The notes beneath the pieces are model-generated. The model was not told the DNA's origin. It saw nothing but the letters and a program-made list of their open reading frames with translations, and made no database searches. The position numbers and the translations under genes are program-made. From NCBI GenBank assembly GCA_002104905.1, contig MCFE01000587.1:1-55546 (forward strand): 55,546 nt of DNA, in the 5' to 3' direction. This stretch comes from Basidiobolus meristosporus CBS 931.73. Lineage: Eukaryota; Fungi; Basidiobolomycota. Below are positions 17,743 to 33,206 of this stretch, in pieces; positions within the stretch are counted from its first letter, which is position 1, and each line of letters starts with the position of its first letter.

Positions 17743-18759
17743 CTACAAATAAGTGGAGAAGCAGGGAAATCGGGCCGATCACCGCTTAAAAAGCGTTACC
17801 TTCCAAGAGTTCGCCGCTTTAGTCCCATCGAAACAGAAAGGGTCGAAGGAACAAAAATCTCACGCGACCTACGAGCCAATTCGGCAAATCTCTGGAAGAC
17901 GTCTCCACACTAAATCAATCCAAACCTCACCTCCAGTTTAAACACCAAATCAATACAAATCTCAAGTTTAAAGATTGAAATGGATGTGCAGAATCGGGCG
18001 ATTCAGTGTTGGCTAGATCGAGTCAACACAATCCACGCCGCCTGTCCAATCATTCCCGGGGCCCACTCGCAAGAATTCGGAAAGATCGCTGGCGACATGG
18101 CCAAAATCGATCATAGTTGCGTTATTTTGGGATTATAAAGGGCAAAACACCACCCTTAGCAAGTGCTGAACCATCCGAGTCACCACTCGGGCGAAATAGG
18201 TAACAGAAGTCACAACTCCACCAACAACTACGTCCTAGAATCCCTATATATAGTGAAATGCGGAATGAAAGCTGAGGTGCCCATACGTGGAATTTCATTA
18301 ACCGAATTGGATGGCGGATGAGCCAGATAATTAGTACGTACAACCTACAACCTACGCCGTGCAACGCTCACCTCACTGCCTACCATAGCTCCCCTGTGTG
18401 CACTTCAAACAACACTGGCCAGCCAATGGGGCCAGGCGCAACTACACAATATGGGATTGTTTGGATCTATCGATGTTTTCTCCGTATCTACAATGATAAA
18501 CAATTACTGCATTGTTTGGAGCATTTGGCCAATGTATTAGGGCAATGTATTAGGTACATGGAATCGCCTCTTTCATTAAATGTTACTTTAGGATTTTCTT
18601 TTTAATCAGAAATTTTCTTCTCAGCCAATCCTCACCCACTGGTTTTTCCTCTTTTAATTAGCCTGAGATTCTTGGACTCTCCACCTAGCAGTCGTTTTTG
18701 GTTTCTCCTCCCCCCATCTCATCCATTTTTATCCTCTCCCACATACCCTTTAGTACATA

Positions 18760-19844
18760 ATGAAAACCGCTCTGGACCTGCCCCAGCCAAACACCACCAA
18801 AACCAAGAGTAAGTACGCGTTGACTACTGCTCCTGGCTTTGCGCCATTTCTAACCTTGCCCTAGGTGATGAGAAGTTTCGGAAATACCTGAGCTTGTGCA
18901 CTCTGGTCGTTCAGAACAGCTCGCTGGTGCTGCTGCTCCGTTACTCTCGCATCATGCAACAACCTGGACAGCCACTGTACATCGCATCCACTGCGGTGTT
19001 CTTTGCTGAGATCATCAAGTTCTTCGTTTGCTTCTATTTTCTATACAGAGAGTCAGGAAAGTGGTCCATCTTTATGAGCACAGTGAACGAGGAGTTTGTC
19101 GAGAACTTCTCCGACATCTACAAGATGGTCATCCCTTCGGGACTCTACGCCATACAGAACAACCTTCTGTTCGTGGCCCTCTCCAACCTTGAGGCCACTA
19201 CGTTCCAGATCACATATCAGATGAAGATCCTCACCACCGCTTTGTTTTCGGTGGTCCTCCTGGGCAAAAGGCTCTCGCGTGGTAAATGGGTTAGCTTGAT
19301 ACTTTTGATGATTGGCGTGATACTTGTCCAGCTACCCGCCTCTACGAAAGTTGCCACGCCAGCCACCGATGAGGACACCAATCTCATGACCGCGCAAACC
19401 CCATTGATTGGGTTGATTGCCGTGATCACTGCGTGTCTCTCTTCTGGCTTTGCTGGCTGTTACTTCGAAAAGATGCTCAAGAGGAACGCAACCAGCATGT
19501 GGGTTCGTAACATCCAACTCGGTATCCCAGGTACGCTATTCTCCTTGATAGCCATGCTGTTCAACGATGGCATGGCAATCAGCACCGATGGCTTCTTCCA
19601 GGGCTACGATTTCTTGACCTGGATCGTGGTGTTGAATCAAGCGCTCGGTGGCTTATTGGTGGCGGTTGTGGTGAAGTATGCGGACAACATCCTCAAAGGA
19701 TTCGCAACATCACTTTCCATCATCATCTCCAGCGTTGTGTCGTTCTATCTGTTCAACTTCTACCCCTCGCCCCAGTTCGCTTTAGGGGCGCTCATTGTGA
19801 TTACTTCGACCTTTCTGTACGGACGCCCTGAGAGAGTCCAGTGA
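18760..19844 (+). CDS. Nucleotide-sugar transporter (SLC35A; UDP-galactose/UDP-GlcNAc/CMP-Sia family)
   Basis: Motifs LYAIQNNL, TFQITYQMKILTTA, SGFAGCYFEKMLK, SMWVRNIQL and VVKYADNILKGFA; about 10 hydrophobic segments. Short first exon from ATG 18760. Confidence 0.92.
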
Positions 19845-20347
19845 TATCTAATCCCTCATATAGTGAACATACATTAGCACCGACTAGTCCATATATCATA
19901 GCCATGCGGATGAACCACTCATCAAAGCTGAGATTTTGGGTTCCTCCGTTCTATCCTCCCCCTCCCCCTCCCCCTTAATCACGACTGGAAATAGACCACC
20001 CCTCGCCCACGTCCTCACACTACATCCTCTCACCTGTACTTTACAAGCTTGACAGATGGTTATACATTTCAATTTTATCCCTGTTCGAGGTTTTCATTAG
20101 AGGACGTGTACGAACCACTTAAATTATAAACATCACCCATGTATAGACTTCAGCCTTCATGAAACAGTGCTCTTTTCAGAAAGGATGGATTTTTTATTTA
20201 CAATCATATCAATAGTAATCAAATTTGGAATCTAAGGTGTGGTTAATGCGGTGATGATTCTGCTAAGCTACCGCTGTGTGCCGGAGTCTACGGATTGCAA
20301 GAGATGGGTGGATATGTAGGTTGACGATCGTCCGAGCGACGGGGCTC

Positions 20348-23055
<2,708 letters not shown>

Positions 23056-23911
23056 TGTGTAAAGACGGAGGTGAGGATGAAGTCACCGACCCATGGGGGC
23101 TCGGGAATTTATTCGGTTTCAATCACGAACGACAGGGCCCTCAAAAATTCCATCCAGCTACGAATCATTGGTCCCTTGCGAAGGGATTTCTCGACATCAA
23201 ATTTTTTCCCTCACATGGAAACACCCCAGCGGAACGAGCCGCTTTAGAGGGAGATTCGCACTTCTCATTCCATTTTGGCTAAATATCCAGGTCACATCGT
23301 TTACAGTGTCCATGCAAATATCCACCCTCTCCCACCTCGTCCCATTTTGTACGAGCGTGTTGATTATCTACACGAGATAAGATACCGTGGTCGACCAATC
23401 ATCTCCCAATGTGCCTTCTACATCCCTGCTGGTGTAGCTTAACCACCAGATATGGAACTCCTTGCTAAAATAAGGTTTATCTGAATGGCTGAGGTTTATG
23501 CAAGGAATAAGCAACCTTATCAAGCTCAACTGTTATCTTGATTATCTCTGATAGATAATTTATCCGCGGTCACACACACCTTCCCACCCAATCCCAATCA
23601 CCAGGTTGGAGGCCGCGCCCTATATAATTCTCAGTGATTTCCCGTCCGTTTGCCATCAGTAACCTCCAAGATCCTTATGGGGTGGTTGATTGGATCCCTA
23701 GAATAGTTGCTTACATGTTTCTGGATTGCCGTTCATTAGGCTCCCCATGGGTTATGGGAATTAAGCGTAATGCTGAACTGGATGATGAATGGGTGGCCAG
23801 CAATGATAGCATAGGTGGATAGTGTGCCTCAAATACCCATTTCCCAATTTATTCACCAATAGTAGTTAGGACTCCTCCCACCGTCCCTTACCCTGTGTAT
23901 AGAGTGCTTCC

Positions 23912-26410
23912 ATGTTCAAGAGTTGGAAAAAAAAAGCGAGCAGCACAAAGAGCGACTCGAGTGAGAAGCGGTTTAGTCTGTTGGGTTCCAAGAGTTCCCA
24001 GAGCCCTCTCTCTGGCAACTCACCGGAGATCCCCTCTGCGGCATATTCCCAAGTAGGTTTTCTTCCATCGTTTGCGTGGGGAAGGGCAGTCCGTGTTGAC
24101 AAGAGGCTGGTTTCTATAGGATGGGACTGGGTACCAAAGGAAGGTGTCCCAGACCTCGACGTTGCTGACCACCCCTTCGGTGGCGAGTTTAAATAGTCAG
24201 GCTAGCAGCGTGGTAGATCTGGGTGCTACAAGCACTCAGCCATCTGAAGAGCTCAAAAAGTGTTTTTCAAGCCCTGGCCCAGAACGAAACGGTCAGACGC
24301 CCCACAAAGATGCCAACGGTCTAAATGTTTCGGTAAAGAAGGAGACGGGGGTTAGAAGCGAAGGTATTTCGATCATTTCGGAAGGCGTGCACCACCCGAT
24401 TTTGACTTCTTGTTCTGTGGTATAAGAAGAGAAGCGCGAAAGTGCCCCCGTCCAACCGGAGGCACCTCCCACAGCAGCCTCGACCGACTTACAAACGAGC
24501 GAAAGTAGGGTGTCTTGTTGAAGCATCGAGCTATTTCAGATTCCCGACAATTCAAACGTTTTGCCTTTAGATATGGCGTTTATTTACCAGCTTGATAACC
24601 GGGTTCAAAAATTACAAAGTCAGGTGGGTTCGCTATCTCTATCGATTTCTGTTGTCGGCCTGCTTCCCAGCCATGAAAAGTATCACCTCCTTCCCGCCAA
24701 CGTGAATCTCATCTTGCTTTGTTCCCGATGATGATTAGGTCAAAGATATGCGACAGTACTTCAAGGGTCTCCTCAAGCGCGACACTGAGGAGCTAGTCAC
24801 AGCAAGCATCAAGATACAGGCTCTTGCACGAGGACATCTGGTAAGTCAGGTCATCATGTTTACCTCACAAGTGTAGTGGGTGTGGGGGGAGATGGAGGGG
24901 AGGGGAGGAGAGGAAGAGGAAGAGGAAGTGCACACCAGCACTTGTGTGTCAGAATGACATGTAGACTGACTGAATCGCCCGGGTGCCACTCTTGCTGGGA
25001 CTGGGTGGACTGTTTGTAGGTTAGGAAGGAGTATCGGGACTACAAGTTCGTCAAGCTGCGAGGACGTCGACTCATGCAGCGACCAGTGACGCTGAGTCAG
25101 TTGCAGAAGGAGTGCTCACGAGTTGGAGGGCTTGCAGGACAAGAAAGCGGAGGTGAGTGAGGGCTCAGGCTCTGGTGGATGTCAGATGGGTGCGTGCAAG
25201 CATGGCCGATGCGGACCAGCCACCCGTATCGGAAGTGTTTGTGTGTGGACCCATGGACAAACGCCAAGAGTGGCTGACTGGTTGGTTTTCTAGCAGAGTT
25301 CATTCCGATAGCGATACTTACTGTGCGACATTGTTTTACTCCTTCACCACCACCACCACCATCACCATTGCCGTTGTCATTGTCATTGCCATTACCATTA
25401 CCATTACCATCACCACTACCTTGACAATGGTCAATGGTCAATGATCAATGGGTGTGAATGGATATAGACACCGAGCAGGACTTGGCGGCAGCGACGATTC
25501 AGAGAGTGTGGCGGGGCCGAATGGTTCGCAAGCGAGTCGGAGAGTACCAGAGGATGAGGAGTGCAGCCACACGGATCCAGTCATTATGGTAAGCGGGCGA
25601 GGATCAGGTGGAACTAGGCAGTGCTTTGACCCTGACTTCTAACCATATCTCTCCTTTTTCTTTGTCGGTTTTCCGTTTGGTGTTGTGTTGTTCACTTCAA
25701 CTGTGTGCGTGTGCGTGTGCGTGTGCGTGTGTGTATTTGCTGTTTGTGCCTGATCTATTGATGGTGTTCCCATTTCCATTGTTGCTGTTTCTGTTGGGGA
25801 TGGCCACACGGTCGATAGGCGCGGGTATCGTTTACGAGAGGCGAATCCACGCATCATGGTGAAGATCCTGCAGAAGAGGTCAAAGGAGCAACAGAAGTGT
25901 ATCCACCGGCTGACTCGTGAAGTCAAGACACTACAGATCCAGATGGATGAAGAGATCATGATCCAGAAGGAGCATGCGGATTCGTTGAGCTACTTGCATA
26001 CTGAGGTAAGTGATGCAATCTTCTTCGCAGTTGTAGCACTAGTAGTGGCAGTAGCGGTAGCGGTAGTAGTTGTAGAAGTAGGAGTAGGAGTCAAGCTGGA
26101 AGAGGATAAGGAGAAGGAGAAGGAGAAGGAGAAGGATGTGAATGTGAATGTGAATGTGAATGTGAAAGAGCATGAACTAATCGCAAGCAAATATGATATG
26201 TAGGTGCGAGCGCTGAAAGCCGAGAAGGCCATCGCTCCCAAGAAATCCCCGACCACACTTCGGAAGCCTCGACTATCAACAGGGCCACCAGCGGTGGATG
26301 TTTCGAAGTTTGTGTTGCAAGAAGACTTTGCCTATCTTAAGGCCGAAATCGAGTATCTGCATCAGCGTTTGGAGGAGATCAGTAGAAATCCCGTTGCTAA
26401 TAATCCTTGA
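23912..26410 (+). CDS. IQ-motif / coiled-coil protein, paralog A (CEP97-like C-terminal module), multi-exon
   Basis: Spliced: MFKSWKKK... low-complexity region ...FIYQLDNRVQKLQSQ|VKDMRQYF...IKIQALARGHL|VRKEY...ATIQRVWRGRMVRK...AATRIQSLW|RGYRLREANP + coiled coil. Three IQxxxRG motifs. One internal intron (about 25153-25467) may hide an exon. Confidence 0.75.
24624..26379 (+). repeat. Left arm of a ~1.76 kb near-identical inverted repeat
   Basis: Its reverse complement matches 29729-31496 across exons and introns, apart from a few SNPs and microsatellite length changes. Mirrored ORFs in the track agree. Confidence 0.95.
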
Positions 26411-26629
26411 TATATGTATCTACACGGCGCTCACTTTCTATATGTATACCCCAGCAATATCGCCTGTATCTCCGTAAAACAAGCATTTGCAATATATATG
26501 GCAGATGTGGCATTCCTGTATCCACAAGCATCTTTAATGGAATAAATCATTTTGTCCAGCAAATAATTAAAGGTAAGGAACAAAGCATCAAATCCCCAGG
26601 GATCTCATGTACATTAGGTGGTTGATGAA

Positions 26630-27640
26630 TTAGATAATTCTCAACTACATATCGCAAACCAAACCGCATTAGTTACCCGAACGAAACGATAATGGCAATT
26701 GACTTACATAATTACTTGGCACAATACCAATTGTGCCATCACTACGTCGAGCCTGCCACCACTTGCCTTTGGTGTCGACTATATCCAGCACTTCATCTCT
26801 GGTAAACGAGATCTCGTTTGGGTCACTGTCACTTGCCTCGTCTAGTTTCCACAGAAAATCAAGTCAATTAGCTATATCTTTGTTGGGGATTAGAATGGGG
26901 AACCATACACGTATAAATCGCTCGCGCCTTGTAAACGTAATTTGGGTTGTGGATCAAAGAGGGGTAATACCCCATCTCTGTTATGCTCGTGCCAGTGCTA
27001 TGTGTTCTTACGTGGTCGACTTCTTGTAACTGTGGTGAAGATTCACTCTCAATCATATCACTTGAGTACATGGATGGTTGGATATCCACGGGGGGACCCC
27101 CATCGAGTCCCAACCCGACTAGCCAGGCAATCTTTGGGTTGGTTTTGAAGTTAGCGTCGCCAACAACAAGATTTCTATAATGTCCTCCCTCTTACCATTC
27201 CAATAGCAGTCACGATAAACCCTGCCCCAAGGCTCACTATGGGAGTGATTTTGATATAGATTGTGTCGTCGATTTCTATCACTAGAAACGCAATAGCAAC
27301 ACCCAGCAATGGGAGGAACTAGGCATGGGTCAATACTGGGAATACAGTCCTCTACTACACTTTCGACTTACCGCCAGCCGGAACTTCCTAATGCAGCCAC
27401 TGAAAGTAGCCGCAGATATCCCAAATATCAGGCAAAATACATAGATGAGCACAAACCACGTAAAGCCTGAAGCTCGTATAGTGCATGCAGAAGCAAAGGA
27501 GATGATTAACCCACACTACATATCATACAAGCACGTCAGTCTACGAAGGGGTGGCATACATTTTCGTGGTTCCTTACTAGGTTCAGTATCAAAGCTACCA
27601 AGAAGCAAGGGCTTCGCCGTGAAAGCCCCAGATGGTTCAT
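26630..27640 (-). CDS. SHO1: Sho1-like osmosensor (4 TM helices + C-terminal SH3), multi-exon; not resolved by the ORF track
   Basis: Manual splicing gives ...FLVALILNL|CGLIISFASAC...FTWFVLIYVFCLIFGISA...FRLA|FLPLLGVAIAFLV...GAGFIVTAIGM|IAWLVGLG...YKARAIYT|YEASDSDPNEISFTRDEVLDIVDTKGKWWQARRSDGTIGIVPSNY|LRII*. All junctions are GT-AG. Confidence 0.85.
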
Positions 27641-28140
27641 ACCGGATTCAAATGGAACAGGGATAAGGTAAAAGGTCGTCGAGTTGAAGGGATACTTTGA
27701 GCCAACTAAGTGGCCGTTACGGATAATATTTTCATGGATAGCTGGAGTATATTCCACCTGGATGGACGCCAAACGTTGTTAGAGAAATAGCAACAGACTC
27801 CCACTACAGCTAGTTTCGGAGATGATGTAATTTGAAGTGGCATAAAGTTACAAGTCTGGCAGATATGATGAGCTAAACCGATGGCTAAATTAAACCCAGA
27901 TTGTCTACCAACTAGGTATGATTGCACACTCCAACCCTTTCATGAAACTGAATTGGGTTAGCAAAAGAACAGCAGACAAGTCCGATCCAATCTGCCCCTG
28001 ATTCCTTGAAGCATATGCAAAATCTAATCTCAAATTCATCTAATTTTTGTTTCTTGACTATCACCAAGAATATCACCTAGACTGCCTCCCAATAAATTCC
28101 CTTATTCCTTGTCACAGTAGGGCTACCCTCACACTATAGT

Positions 28141-29461
28141 ATGACGCTTGCCGACGAGATAAGGTCCGCCCCGAGAACGGCCGCGTTCGTGGTTTTTTTC
28201 TTGGGTCAAGCGGCCATAATCAACTTTTCTCAAATAGCCGGGTTGGCCTTGAAGCCCATCAACAATGGTTGTTTCAAGCGGTTCATCGATTACACACAGC
28301 GCATGTTCGGTCTGTTGCTGGTGGCCATAACCGAGCTCTTCGCCCCCGCCTCGTTCGTTATAACTGCTGATCCCGACGCGGCAGACATTTTCAACGACAC
28401 TTCTGACCCTTCGCTCCCCCAACTTTCTTTTCCCGAGCGCATTATACTTATCGCAAACCATCAAGTAAGACTATTCCACTGACCCAGCTGCGAGGGCGTT
28501 TCTAATCTTGTTTTGGCTGGTACGCATAGATATACGCCGATTGGATCTATCTATGGTAAGAGGCCCTTGGTCTTCCTTCGTAGCATGGTATACGTATACT
28601 CATACTGGAAATAGGTGTGTAGCATATTTCTCAAGAGCCCACGACGCAATCAAGATCATTTTGAAGGATTCGTTGAAACATGTCCCAATCTTTGGCTGGT
28701 AAGTGTAGACCCATGGAAAATCTCGACTGCCTATTTTCTAATCGCTTTACTTCAAACAGGGTAAATTTCCCTCTTTTACAAGTGTGTCGACACTCGCTCA
28801 TAACATTTTTTTCAAGGGGATGCAATTTTTCGATTTCATTTTTCTGAGAAGGAACTGGTCGGCAGACCAGATCCATCTGGCCAAACACCTGGCCCACCTC
28901 TCGGAAGGGGCCCACCCGTTGTGGCTCATCCTCTTCCCGGAAGGAACCGTCGTCTCGAAGGATACTCGAAAGAGGTCGGCAGCATTTGCGGAGAAGGAGA
29001 AGCTTTCGAACCCAAAGAACGTACTCTTGCCACGGTCGACCGGGATGCATTTTTGTTGCTCCCAGCTAAGAAAATCGGTGGATTATGTGTACGATATGAC
29101 CATTGGCTACGAGGGATTGAACCAGGACCAGATCCCGCAGATCGTATACACCCTGAAGAGCATGTACTTCCAGAATAAATACCCACGCCAAGTTCACATC
29201 CATGTGCGCCGCTACGAGATGAGCGCCATTCCCACCGACGAGGCAGAATTCACCCAATGGATCCGGGCGAGATGGCAAGAAAAAGACGCCCTGATGGAGG
29301 ATTTCTACAAACATGGCCGCTTTCCGGCCACGGAGCACAAGAAAGTCATCCACATCAAGATGAACCACATCTCAGACCTTGTTCAGATCTGGCTCCTCAG
29401 TATCCCGTTAATCGTGGTATCGTGTGCCGTATGGTATTCCATAAGGAACTTTATTTTATGA
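28141..29461 (+). CDS. Phospholipid acyltransferase (LCLAT1/Cst26-like, PlsC family)
   Basis: NHQ|IYADW (HX4D motif), IILKDSLKHVPIFGW, FIFLRRNW, LILFPEGT, LLPRSTG and VYDMTIGY. Confidence 0.9.
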
Positions 29462-29688
29462 TCAGTGGTTGTGTTGGCTTTTTCTCTGTAAAAATCACTA
29501 TCCATTAATATGATGTATCTAGAGAACGATGGTATATTGATTTATAACTCCACGATAAACTCCGAGATATTGTTTGGTTATTCTATCACTAGTGGTATTG
29601 ATATGGATATAGCTATGGATGTGGGATATACGGATTCTCATTCCTGGATACACAGGAAATGTGTAGATGATTTGCTATGGAGTTCTGG

Positions 29689-32480
29689 CTAACTGCTAGT
29701 ATCTTCATGTGCATACGAATCTAAAGCCATCTCTTCCAAACGCTGATGCAGATACTCGATTTCGGCCTTAAGATAGGCAAAGTCTTCTTGCAACACAAAC
29801 TTCGAAACATCCACCGCTGGTGGCCCTGTTGATAGTCGAGGCTTCCGAAGTGTGGTCGGGGATTTCTTGGGAGCGATGGCCTTCTCGGCTTTCAGCGCTC
29901 GCACCTACATATCATATTTGCTTGCGATTAGTTCATGCTCTTTCACATTCACATTCACATCCTTCTCCTTCTCCTTCTCCTTCTCCTTATCCTCTTCCAG
30001 CTTGACTCCTACTCCTGCTTCTACAACTACTACCGCTACCGCTACTGCACTACTAGTGCTACTACTAGTGCTACTACTAGTGCTACAACTGCGAAGAAGA
30101 TTGCATCACTTACCTCAGTATGCAAGTAGCTCAACGAATCCGCATGCTCCTTCTGGATCATGATCTCTTCATCCATCTGGATCTGTAGTGTCTTGACTTC
30201 ACGAGTCAGCCGGTGGATACACTTCTGTTGCTCCTTTGACCTCTTCTGCAGGATCTTCACCATGATGCGTGGATTCGCCTCTCGTAAACGATACCCGCGC
30301 CTATCGACCGTGTGGCCATCCCCGACAGAAACAGCAACGATGGAAATGGGAACACCATCAATAGATCAGGCACAAACAGCAAATACACACACGCACACGC
30401 ACACGCACACACGCACACAGTTGAAGTGAACAACACAACACCAAACGGAAAACCGACAAAGAAAAAGGAGAGATATGGTTAGAAGTCAGGGTCAAAGCAC
30501 TGCCTAGTTCCACCTTATCCTCGCCCGCTTACCATAATGACTGGATCCGTGTGGCTGCACTCCTCATCCTCTGATACTCTCCGACTCGCTTGCGAACCAT
30601 TCGGCCCCGCCACACTCTCTGAATCGTCGCTGCCGCCAAGTCCTGCTCGGTGTCTATATCCATTCACACCCATTGATCATTGATCATTGACCATTGTCAA
30701 GGTAGTGGTAATGGTAATGGTAATGGTAATGGCAATGGCAACGGCAATGGTGATAGTGGTGGTGGTGGTGGTGGTGAAGGAGTAAAACAATGTCGCACAG
30801 TAAGTATCGCTATCGGAATGAACTCTGCTAGAAAACCAACCAGTCAGCCACTCTTGGCGTTTGTCCATGAGTCCACACACAAACACTTCCGATACGGGTG
30901 GCTGGTCCGCATCGGCCATGCTTGCACGCACCCATCTGACATCCACCAGAGCCTGAGCCCTCACTCACCTCCGCTTTCTTGTCCTGCAAGCCCTCCAACT
31001 CGTGAGCACTCCTTCTGCAACTGACTCAGCGTCACTGGTCGCTGCATGAGTCGACGTCCTCGCAGCTTGACGAACTTGTAGTCCCGATACTCCTTCCTAA
31101 CCTACAAACAGTCCACCCAGTCCCAGCAAGAGTGGCACCCGGGCGATTCAGTCAGTCTACATGTCATTCTGACACACAAGTGCTGGTGTGCACTTCCTCT
31201 TCCTCTTCCTCTCCTCCCCTCCCCTCCATCTCCCCCACACCCACTACACTTGTGAGGTAAACATGATGACCTGACGTACCAGATGTCCTCGTGCAAGAGC
31301 CTGTATCTTGATGCTTGCTGTGACTAGCTCCTCAGTGTCGCGCTTGAGGAGACCCTTGAAGTACTGTCGCATATCTTTGACCTAATCATCATCGGGAACA
31401 AAGCAAGATGAGATTCACGTTGGCGAGAAGGAGGTGATACTTTTCATGGCTGGGAAGCAGGCCGACAACAGAAATCGATAGAGATTGTGAACCCACCTGT
31501 CGCTGCAACTTTTGGACCCGATTGTCAAGTTGATAAACGAAATCCTGATCTACTCGACAATATGAGACTTCGGGTATCTTTCATCACGCCAAAAACATCT
31601 ACAATTCTACCTTCATTCGTATCTTGATCACAAGTAATCTGGCTTTGATCTAGCTCCTCATTGATATCTGTGACTTTCTGAGCTTTGAAGAGGCTAGAGT
31701 TAGTTTTGATGGCATAAAATTTCTGAATATGTTTGAGCATACATGTAGAGATAGTTGCGATGTCTTTGTCTTTGACATTGTCTATATCGTTATCGTTATC
31801 GTTATCGTTGTTTTTGGTGTCAAGGTCAGGCACAGGCGACATCGAAACTACTTTTTCGCCAATGCTATCCTCTTCGGGCTTAGTAGAATCCTGAATATGC
31901 TCTGTCTCTCGTGACAAGGAATTCACAACGCCACTTTCGGGTTGCGTAATCGTAGCAAGTTCCTCAGGGCTATCGCTGGTAAGTCCACTTTTAGGCTTGT
32001 CTGGAACGCATTCAACTGCTGCTTGTGAAACGATACTCGATTCCTTGGTGGCAGACAGGACTTGGGAAACATTACTCTCTGAAAGTCTATCAGTTTCTTT
32101 TTTGACACTTGGAACATGATTTTCAAGTTTGTCTTGGTTTTGTGAAACAACAACCGTCTGTTGAACGCGATCGGTATTTACATTGCTGAATTTCGATTCC
32201 ACAGGATTGCTAGAACTATAGGTATTTGCTTTTTGAAGAGGAAGGACCGGGACCCCGTTGTCCTTTCCACTAACTGGCTACGAGAGAATTAAGATTACTA
32301 GGGAGTACTTACTACGGGTGATACCTAACGGGTACATACTGTAGTGAAGGAATAGGATCTGATGTCTTGAACGCGGTTACTCTCGAAACTGCGAGTCTTT
32401 TTCGAACTAAGTAGACCAAAGCGCTTTGCCTCGCTTTGGTCCTCCTTGGTGGTGGTCTTTTTCTTCCAACTTTTGAACAT
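29689..32480 (-). CDS. IQ-motif / coiled-coil protein, paralog B, multi-exon
   Basis: ATG at 32478-32480 opens MFKSWKKKTTTKEDQSEAKRFGLLSSK, followed by a long acidic exon, a 53-nt exon DQDFVYQLDNRVQKLQRQ (31497-31549), and the shared IQ/coiled-coil exons. It ends ...QRLEEMALDSYAHEDTSS*. Confidence 0.75.
29729..31496 (-). repeat. Right arm of the ~1.76 kb inverted repeat
   Basis: Reverse-complement match to 24624-26379. Confidence 0.95.
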
Positions 32481-33206
32481 CGAAGATGCCTGACAAATCC
32501 ACGGTATCAGGCAATAATAGAGAATCAGTCAAATTTCGGGAAAACCAGTCAACTTGTGTACAGAAGATTTCGTGGATTTCCCAATCCATAATCAAAACAA
32601 AACAGTTTTTTTGCTGCGTGGGATCCAGTTCCAATTTGTTGCTTAAGCCACGCCCATGATATTGCATCATTTGCTGGCACCTGGTTATAGTTTGACAAGG
32701 GGACACGTGACCGGCCGGATTTCATCTTGGGATTTGCACCCAATGCGGTGGGCACATGAGACGAATCACAAAGGCGGGAAAGAATGCTTACACGAATCAT
32801 CGCTCGAATCACGAATTGGGCACAAAGACCGATTGACACACCAGCTCCCAATTTGTATGTCCGCTCATATCTCAGTGTACCCCCACTAACAGCCCAATCA
32901 GTAATCAATTTGGAACTCCGTTGGGCAGCACCAATCACCAGCCATGAGTGCTTCTTTGACTTGGTACAATGATCAGTAGTTAATCATGAATATCAGTCCG
33001 GTTAAAAGGTGCAACATTTAGGATGAGCACTCGCAAATATGGCTAAATTACCGTTTGATTGACATTGGTCAAGAGGTTAATTCTAGGCTGATTCGTTTTT
33101 TTTGGTAAGCTGCGAATGGGTGGTATATCAGTGGGATTTCTTCTTGGTTCCCTTATAAACAAACCGTTCTTCAAGCACCGTTTCCAGGTTTCTTTGAGCT
33201 TTGGGA

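Follow-up and report, generated by a model that had tools for sequence, protein, structure and literature searches.

An old inverted pair of IQ-motif genes in Basidiobolus meristosporus whose 3' halves have very probably been homogenised by gene conversion

Inverted gene pairs and partial homogenisation

Arm-to-arm gene conversion is reportedly a feature of sex-chromosome palindromes, as described by Rozen et al. in 2003 for the human Y. The locus discussed here consists of two convergent (tail-to-tail) genes, A and B, in the early-diverging fungus Basidiobolus meristosporus CBS 931.73, and it resembles these palindromes in having inverted arms that are very probably kept alike by intrachromosomal conversion. 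The stretch analysed is the whole contig MCFE01000587.1 of assembly GCA_002104905.1 (55,546 nucleotides (nt), here called the window), and all positions refer to this contig unless another is named. Sex-chromosome palindromes have arms of tens of kilobases (kb) to megabases, an identity above 99.9% and short spacers, whereas here the arms are 1.76 kb long and 98.7% identical, and the spacer of 3.35 kb is longer than the arms and holds two genes. A sequence-only reading of the window had likened the locus to a palindrome; this likeness holds for the inverted arms with conversion, but the locus is an inverted repeat and not a classical palindrome.

In fungi, the YNL018C/YNL034W 'Centroid' inverted repeat on Saccharomyces chromosome XIV has been described as a flip/flop locus (Salzberg et al. 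2022, PMC9731477). This is also an inverted gene pair that has been homogenised recurrently in each species, and the paralogs are closer to each other than the orthologs are, as is the case here. In Saccharomyces, however, homogenisation extends over the whole 4-kb repeat with its two gene pairs, and the 24-kb spacer occurs in either orientation (PMC9731477), whereas in Basidiobolus homogenisation is confined to 1.76 kb at the 3' side of one pair, the 5' halves are old, and no inversion of the 3.35-kb spacer was observed among the three loci compared. In mammals, the pairs BMP8A/B, DDX19A/B and TUBG1/2 show segment-limited concerted evolution over more than 100 million years (Carson and Scherer 2009, PMC2720389). 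In these pairs too, the duplication predates speciation and only part of the gene is homogenised, introns included (PMC2720389). The authors speculate that homogenisation was perhaps selected to keep homo- or hetero-binding domains (PMC2720389). These pairs are from animals, in contrast to the convergent inverted pair with two genes between its arms in an early-diverging fungus.

The process itself has been known for decades, and the locus is a new example rather than a new kind. In the literature, no paper linking Basidiobolus to gene conversion at this locus was found. The value of the locus lies in a partial concerted evolution that comes with an internal control (5' against 3' half), an external control (a third paralog, C) and a replicate in a second species. 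Gene trees or duplication dates derived from the 3' half of A and B would mislead badly.

Divergence of genes A and B within and between species

The inverted repeat was located by repeat search and blastn (24583-26379 against 31537-29729), and a global alignment sets the near-identical tract at 24624-26379 (+, 1756 nt) and 31496-29729 (-, 1768 nt). Arm A and arm B match at 1721 positions and mismatch at 22, and 4-5 indels account for a further 38 gap columns; the indels all lie in microsatellites, except for a single G at 24884. Chance is far from able to give a 1.76-kb inverted repeat of such identity. Outside the arms, blastn of the gene A region against the gene B region returned a match of only 28 nt, at the start codons. 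Near-identity over about 1.76 kb from a splice donor onwards, introns included, had been noticed in the sequence-only reading, and this is what the alignment gives. Both open reading frames (ORFs) begin with MFKSWKKK, at 23912 (+) and 32480 (-), again as noticed earlier. In A and in B, exon 1 has 141 nt (47 codons) and is followed by a GT donor, and exons 4-8 have equal lengths (53, 102, 133, 121 and 187 nt).

Divergence was calculated per segment by the Nei-Gojobori method, as nonsynonymous (dN) and synonymous (dS) divergence and as the proportion of synonymous differences (pS), with the exons joined in scripts for the frames and for dN/dS. The paralogs of B. meristosporus (Bm) and Basidiobolus ranarum (Br) are referred to as BmA, BmB, BmC, BrA and BrB. 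Between BmA and BmB, synonymous sites are saturated throughout exons 1-4. Exon 1 has a pS of 0.83 and a dN of 0.60, and exons 2-3 have 23/106 residues in common (dN 1.04) and are barely alignable apart from a short SVKKET-like patch, close to the earlier description of these middle regions as unalignable. Exon 4 is identical at 37/53 bases, with a pS of at least 1 and a dN of 0.15; its 15 codons, counted by hand on the alignment, hold 2 replacement differences and 9 synonymous ones, which is exactly the synonymous count given for this 53-nt exon before. Directly downstream the picture changes, with a dS of 0.008 and a dN of 0 in exons 5-8 and a dS of 0.023 and a dN of 0 in the first 58 codons of exon 9. 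Divergence is thus non-uniform along the aligned genes. Within the tract, exons differ at 2/719 sites, both synonymous (25547 and 26374), and introns at 20/1024 sites (11 without the intron-6 microsatellite), indicating that the exons are less diverged than the introns (Fisher p = 0.0016).

At its 5' end, the tract begins at the exon-4 donor, with an edge that falls between 24620 and 24635. Its 3' edge lies at 26379 (A) and 29729 (B), which is 10 codons (A) and 13 codons (B) short of the stops, where about ten had been estimated; the last codons beyond this edge and the 3' untranslated regions (3'UTRs) of A and B do not align. The tract introns (24624-24738, 24841-25019, 25153-25467, 25589-25818 and 26006-26203) are 115-315 nt long and rich in hexanucleotide microsatellites.

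Paralog C (P0002, 480 amino acids (aa), contig MCFE01000024.1) has the same nine-exon plan as A and B and is 55-67% identical to them in the 3' exons. It is an unpaired control and is not homogenised; within 22 kb around C, neither an inverted repeat nor a second IQ-gene copy was found. The counterparts of the tract introns in C measure 59-134 nt, the A/B introns being 2-5 times longer, and introns 1-3 have about 60 nt in every copy. GC at third codon positions (GC3) and intron GC (the latter compared with introns 1-3) are raised inside the tract in A and B of both species and not in C. This is compatible with GC-biased conversion but is suggestive only and no proof, as the two halves also differ in protein constraint. 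The longer, GC-rich tract introns may be due to GC-biased conversion or to insertions spread by conversion.

The relative used for comparison was B. ranarum (GCA_040143965.1), giving two species with one genome each and no outgroup. Its contig L003 holds GARS, A (P0003, 422 aa), an SH3-domain gene, an acyltransferase gene and the inverted last exon of B, and then ends, while contig L004 holds a RING-finger neighbour and the 5' half of B (P0006) and ends 89 nt into intron 4. The A-SH3-acyltransferase-B layout is common to both species. Because both paralogs stand in the same synteny in both species, the A/B duplication is older than the separation of B. meristosporus from B. ranarum. The two B. 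ranarum contig ends lie 106 nt (L003, 8571-8676) and 111 nt (L004, 8270-8380) into exact runs of identity between A and B. This is the expected behaviour of a k-mer assembler entering a collapsed repeat, and the interior of the B arm seems to be collapsed or missing.

The orthologs BmA and BrA have a dS of 1.55 in exons 5-8, and dN between species is 0.12 in the 3' half, as against 0.43 (A pair) and 0.83 (B pair) in exons 2-3. For intron 4, identity is 97% for BmA against BmB and 100% for BrA against BrB, but 47-49% between species, a level at which it is unalignable. In exon 9, BrA and BrB have a dS of 0.36, and synonymous sites between species are saturated. The sequence-only reading had predicted that 5' halves would group by paralog and 3' halves by strain. 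With B. ranarum, the protein tree of exons 1-3 groups by paralog, BmA with BrA (100/99) and BmB with BrB (84/92), and the DNA tree of exon 9 groups by species, BmA with BmB (99/98) and BrA with BrB (99/99), as does intron 4. The older duplication, the discordant trees and the within-species identity of introns therefore show that the 3' part was homogenised independently in each lineage, that is, by interlocus gene conversion or concerted evolution. The homogenisation extends to introns, and selection on the protein is therefore excluded as its cause.

In B. ranarum, the tract of exact identity extends from about 25 nt inside exon 4 to a point some 65 nt into exon 9. Beyond this point, BrA and BrB are about 90% identical (dS 0.30-0.36) over the remainder of exon 9, the tail and roughly 65 nt of the 3'UTR, which points to an older conversion event. 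A tail of the ..Y..EDTS type is common to BmB and BmC (5/13 residues), whereas the tail of BrB matches BrA at 7/13 residues and the B/C type at 0-1/13. Because BrB carries the BrA type of tail and not the B/C type, A was, on parsimony, probably the donor and B the recipient in this older event. The 5' edge of the tract is nearly equal in the two species (within about 50 nt). In B. meristosporus, identity stops abruptly at the point where the A-type tail gives way to the B/C-type tail. This 3' edge may therefore mark not a random end of conversion but the place where homology runs out, possibly the original duplication breakpoint.

Proposed history, read evidence and alternative explanations

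The pair thus very probably consists of old inverted paralogs with a recent, partial gene conversion between their arms. This history had been proposed from the window alone, and the synteny with B. ranarum and the saturated 5' dS, set against 0.008 in exons 5-8, now stand behind it. Non-allelic (interlocus) conversion between inverted copies 3.35 kb apart would repeatedly have replaced the 3' part of one copy, exons and introns alike, by that of the other. The latest conversion in B. meristosporus, in one event or more, would be very recent and would span 24624-26379; its 5' edge is at the exon-4 donor, shortly after intron 3, which is unalignable, and the fast-evolving exons 1-3, and its 3' edge is where the unrelated C-terminal tails of A and B begin. 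In B. ranarum, independent events would have had slightly different ends, the older one moving the A tail and about 65 nt of 3'UTR into B. The mechanism may have been double-strand-break repair templated by the other arm, with edges set by loss of homology. Homology-dependent repair needs sequence similarity, and this is the basis of the simplest reading of why only the 3' half is homogenised. The disordered 5' half would have evolved fast and with many indels, leaving no homology for repair, and the constrained helical half would have stayed similar enough for repair from the other arm, with the introns carried along.

Reciprocal crossovers that invert the spacer could also keep arms alike. 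This mechanism has been documented for the Saccharomyces inverted repeat pair (PMC9731477), and inverted arms of 1.76 kb at 98.7% identity are a suitable substrate for it. Nevertheless, the spacer lies the same way round with respect to B/C at the three loci compared, which are those of the window, B. ranarum and the block around C (with one genome per species and short-read contigs that do not span an arm). In addition, after a single crossover the tails would have changed places, but BmB still carries the ancestral B/C-type tail beside the acyltransferase gene, and the presence of the same tail type on both B. ranarum genes is impossible by reciprocal exchange. Such crossovers are therefore very unlikely to be the main process at this locus.

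Assemblers of short reads are poor at repeats of this kind, the B. ranarum assembly breaks exactly at the arms, and the evidence for two arms comes from short-read contigs; one arm might accordingly have been built or polished from the reads of the other. The read evidence comes from read-derived contigs of the source sample (two short-read runs) and from one run of spliced contigs; three further read-archive runs contained almost nothing of the stretch. Against an artefact, k-mer depth is 323-358 in the arms and 198-208 in the flanks (about 1.65x), both arm-specific letters at 25547 are present in read-derived contigs, and such contigs also carry the arm B letters at 25251, 25780 and 25795. 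One contig joins the 5' half of A to its arm (23900-24664) and another runs from arm end to arm end across the entire spacer (26344-29764), and contigs bridge three arm junctions out of four. Furthermore, the arms differ at 22 sites and by 4-5 indels, and the same architecture is found in a second species. Taken together, this makes an assembly artefact highly improbable.

The sharp edges of the repeat on both sides could also suggest a recent, partial inverted duplication of a 3' half, placed beside an unrelated 5' region to form a young chimeric gene, and the 3' edge may indeed be an old duplication breakpoint, as the A tail is unlike the B/C-type tail. However, the 5' halves are homologous, as they agree in the 47-codon exon 1 and its intron position, in the nine-exon plan and in the phase of the 53-nt exon, and both paralogs are already present in the same synteny in B. 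ranarum, where the orthologs have a dS above 1.5. Contamination of the B. ranarum assembly by B. meristosporus is excluded as a way around this, as introns are unalignable between the species. A young chimera has a very small chance of being the correct explanation. Purifying selection alone, without exchange, would fit a 3' half that is the structured, conserved part, with the low dN between species given above, and exons that differ less than introns within the tract, but it is refuted because synonymous sites and five introns are near-identical within B. meristosporus, while between the species synonymous sites are saturated and intron 4, the sole intron compared, is 47-49% identical.

Several points weigh against old paralogs with recent conversion as set out above. 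The bridging contigs cover three of the junctions, the fourth being that between arm B and the 5' half of B (about 31497), and the assignment of arm variants to their flanks and the orientation of the spacer rest on the assembly. The sample holds two haplotypes that differ by about 0.3%, with about 12 differing sites and a 3-nt indel at 28394 in about 4.1 kb of unique sequence. This difference is similar in size to the exonic divergence between the arms, and allelic variation could account for some of the 22 sites at which the arms differ. Exons 5-8 of BrB are on none of the B. ranarum contigs retrieved, and their identity to BrA is deduced from the contig ends. Finally, exon 1 puts B nearer to C and exon 4 puts A nearer to B, and two species without an outgroup give no root for ordering the A/B and B/C duplications.

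The spliced-contig run contains 37% of the words of the window, is nearly identical to the window genome and is RNA-like, though listed as 'DNA?'. In three genes, every intron is spliced out of its contigs, and an Illumina adapter is present at one loose end. The possibility that the run came from a related strain was rejected on the basis of this RNA-like character and near-identity. All 8 introns of A are reproduced exactly in the spliced contigs as GT..AG joints. Gene A is transcribed and gene B probably is too, because both letters of the exon-7 site 25547 occur in spliced contigs and one spliced contig enters the private tail of A.

Encoded proteins, gene family and neighbouring genes

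The IQ/coiled-coil module proposed in the sequence-only reading stands in its first part, with three IQ motifs recognised by Pfam (PF00612); the coiled coil is backed only by a monomer model with long, confidently predicted helices. Against PF00612, exon 7 by itself reaches 28 bits, with a gathering cut-off of 20.3, and P0003 and P0002, which are full-length relatives, reach 59.6 and 41.9 bits with three stretches each. Judged by these profile matches, A and B belong to the IQ motif proteins and may bind calmodulin. The Pfam scan returned no domain other than IQ, and the PDB sequence search gave no significant match, the best being a myosin IQ region (E = 0.26). The IQ proteins IQCG and CEP97 have tandem IQ motifs on a long helix, as here, but are without similarity outside the IQ motifs. 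A CEP97-like identity was rejected, as Pfam finds no leucine-rich repeat, the N-terminal 146 residues are predicted to be disordered and the profile search returned only generic IQ matches outside Basidiobolus.

The AlphaFold monomer model, made for the B. ranarum A protein from a six-sequence alignment, has a mean predicted local distance difference test (pLDDT) score of only 54. In this model, residues 1-146 are predicted to be disordered and correspond to exons 1-3, the unconverted part. Long helices are predicted at residues 147-204, 251-296, 299-361 (pLDDT 87-95) and 390-420, corresponding to exons 4-9, which is essentially the converted part. Pairing of these helices as a coiled coil may be proposed from the model. 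Homogenisation could itself have been selected if the IQ/helical stalk has to be the same in both proteins, for example for the sharing of calmodulin light chains or for co-assembly via the long C-terminal helices, with the disordered N-termini giving the two proteins different targeting. This idea is tentative and rather unlikely to be correct; if true, it would explain the near-constant 5' edge in two species with saturated synonymous sites. It could also be that interlocus conversion is unusually frequent throughout the Basidiobolus genome, with this locus as one visible example.

An exhaustive search of representatives with exon 8 (62 aa) returned only the window's own fragment model and paralog C, and word searches with P0002, P0004 and a two-sequence profile found the family only in Basidiobolus, the other hits being generic animal IQ matches. 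Two of these animal matches, P0007 and P0008, were rejected as relatives, being unrelated outside the IQ motifs. The N-terminal motif MFKSWKKK..KRFSLLGSK and the C-terminal helix were found only in Basidiobolus in these searches. A, B and C thus appear, by sequence similarity, to be a Basidiobolus-restricted gene family.

The coordinates of the two genes, the arms and the other features are given in Table 1.

Table 1. Features of the A/B locus in contig MCFE01000587.1
Feature	Position	Strand	Details
Gene A (BmA)	23912-26410	+	9 exons, 421 aa; open frame, GT..AG at every intron
Gene A, exons 1-5	23912-24052, 24120-24363, 24427-24504, 24571-24623, 24739-24840	+	
Gene A, exons 6-9	25020-25152, 25468-25588, 25819-26005, 26204-26410	+	
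Gene B (BmB)	32480-29689	-	9 exons, 519 aa; open frame, canonical GT..AG splice sites
Gene B, exons 1-5	32480-32340, 32277-31743, 31682-31611, 31549-31497, 31381-31280	-	
Gene B, exons 6-9	31101-30969, 30653-30533, 30300-30114, 29904-29689	-	
Arm A, homogenised tract	24624-26379	+	introns 4-8, exons 5-8, first 58 codons and two bases of exon 9
Arm B, inverted copy of arm A	31496-29729	-	repeat search, blastn, alignment
Exon 4 of A, just outside the tract	24571-24623	+	53 nt; partner in B at 31549-31497
Three IQ calmodulin-binding motifs (PF00612)	24814-25830	+	IQ1 in exons 5/6; IQ2 from 25497, exon 7; IQ3 from 25575, exons 7/8
Spacer between the arms	26380-29728	.	3349 nt, two genes
SH3-domain gene in the spacer	about 26630-27640/27840	-	gene calls, Pfam matches, spliced minus-strand contigs
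Lysophospholipid acyltransferase gene in the spacer	28141-29461	+	Pfam Acyltransf_C, 1.8e-19
Hexanucleotide and trinucleotide microsatellites, intron 6	25345-25451	+	
Further microsatellites in arm A	24894-24928, 25703-25731, 26051-26166		

Most of the differences between the arms sit in the microsatellites listed in Table 1. The nine-exon models of A and B correct the public annotation, and the 5' part of gene B is concordant with the NCBI model P0004. In the NCBI annotation, gene A is represented by three models of 217, 80 and 153 aa and gene B by three models of 312, 80 and 177 aa. The two 80-aa models (25202-25444, +; 30677-30919, -) are ORFs across the intron-6 microsatellite and are spurious.

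The gene order of the spacer is collinear with B. ranarum and with the paralogous block around C. This block (MCFE01000024.1, 10001-18943) has the order C, acyltransferase, SH3 and nucleotide-sugar transporter, and it mirrors the order B, acyltransferase, SH3, A, GARS and transporter at 18700-32500 of the window, which suggests that a segmental or whole-genome duplication took place before the two species separated. The block is without GARS and without an A-like copy. Its acyltransferase is 68-73% identical to the copy in the window, and the B. ranarum ortholog is about 80% identical. The SH3 gene of the spacer is annotated at just 124 aa, and the spliced contigs add introns at 27132-27195, 27319-27371 and 27516-27577; its relatives in B. 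ranarum and in the paralogous block have 233 and 235 aa, respectively.

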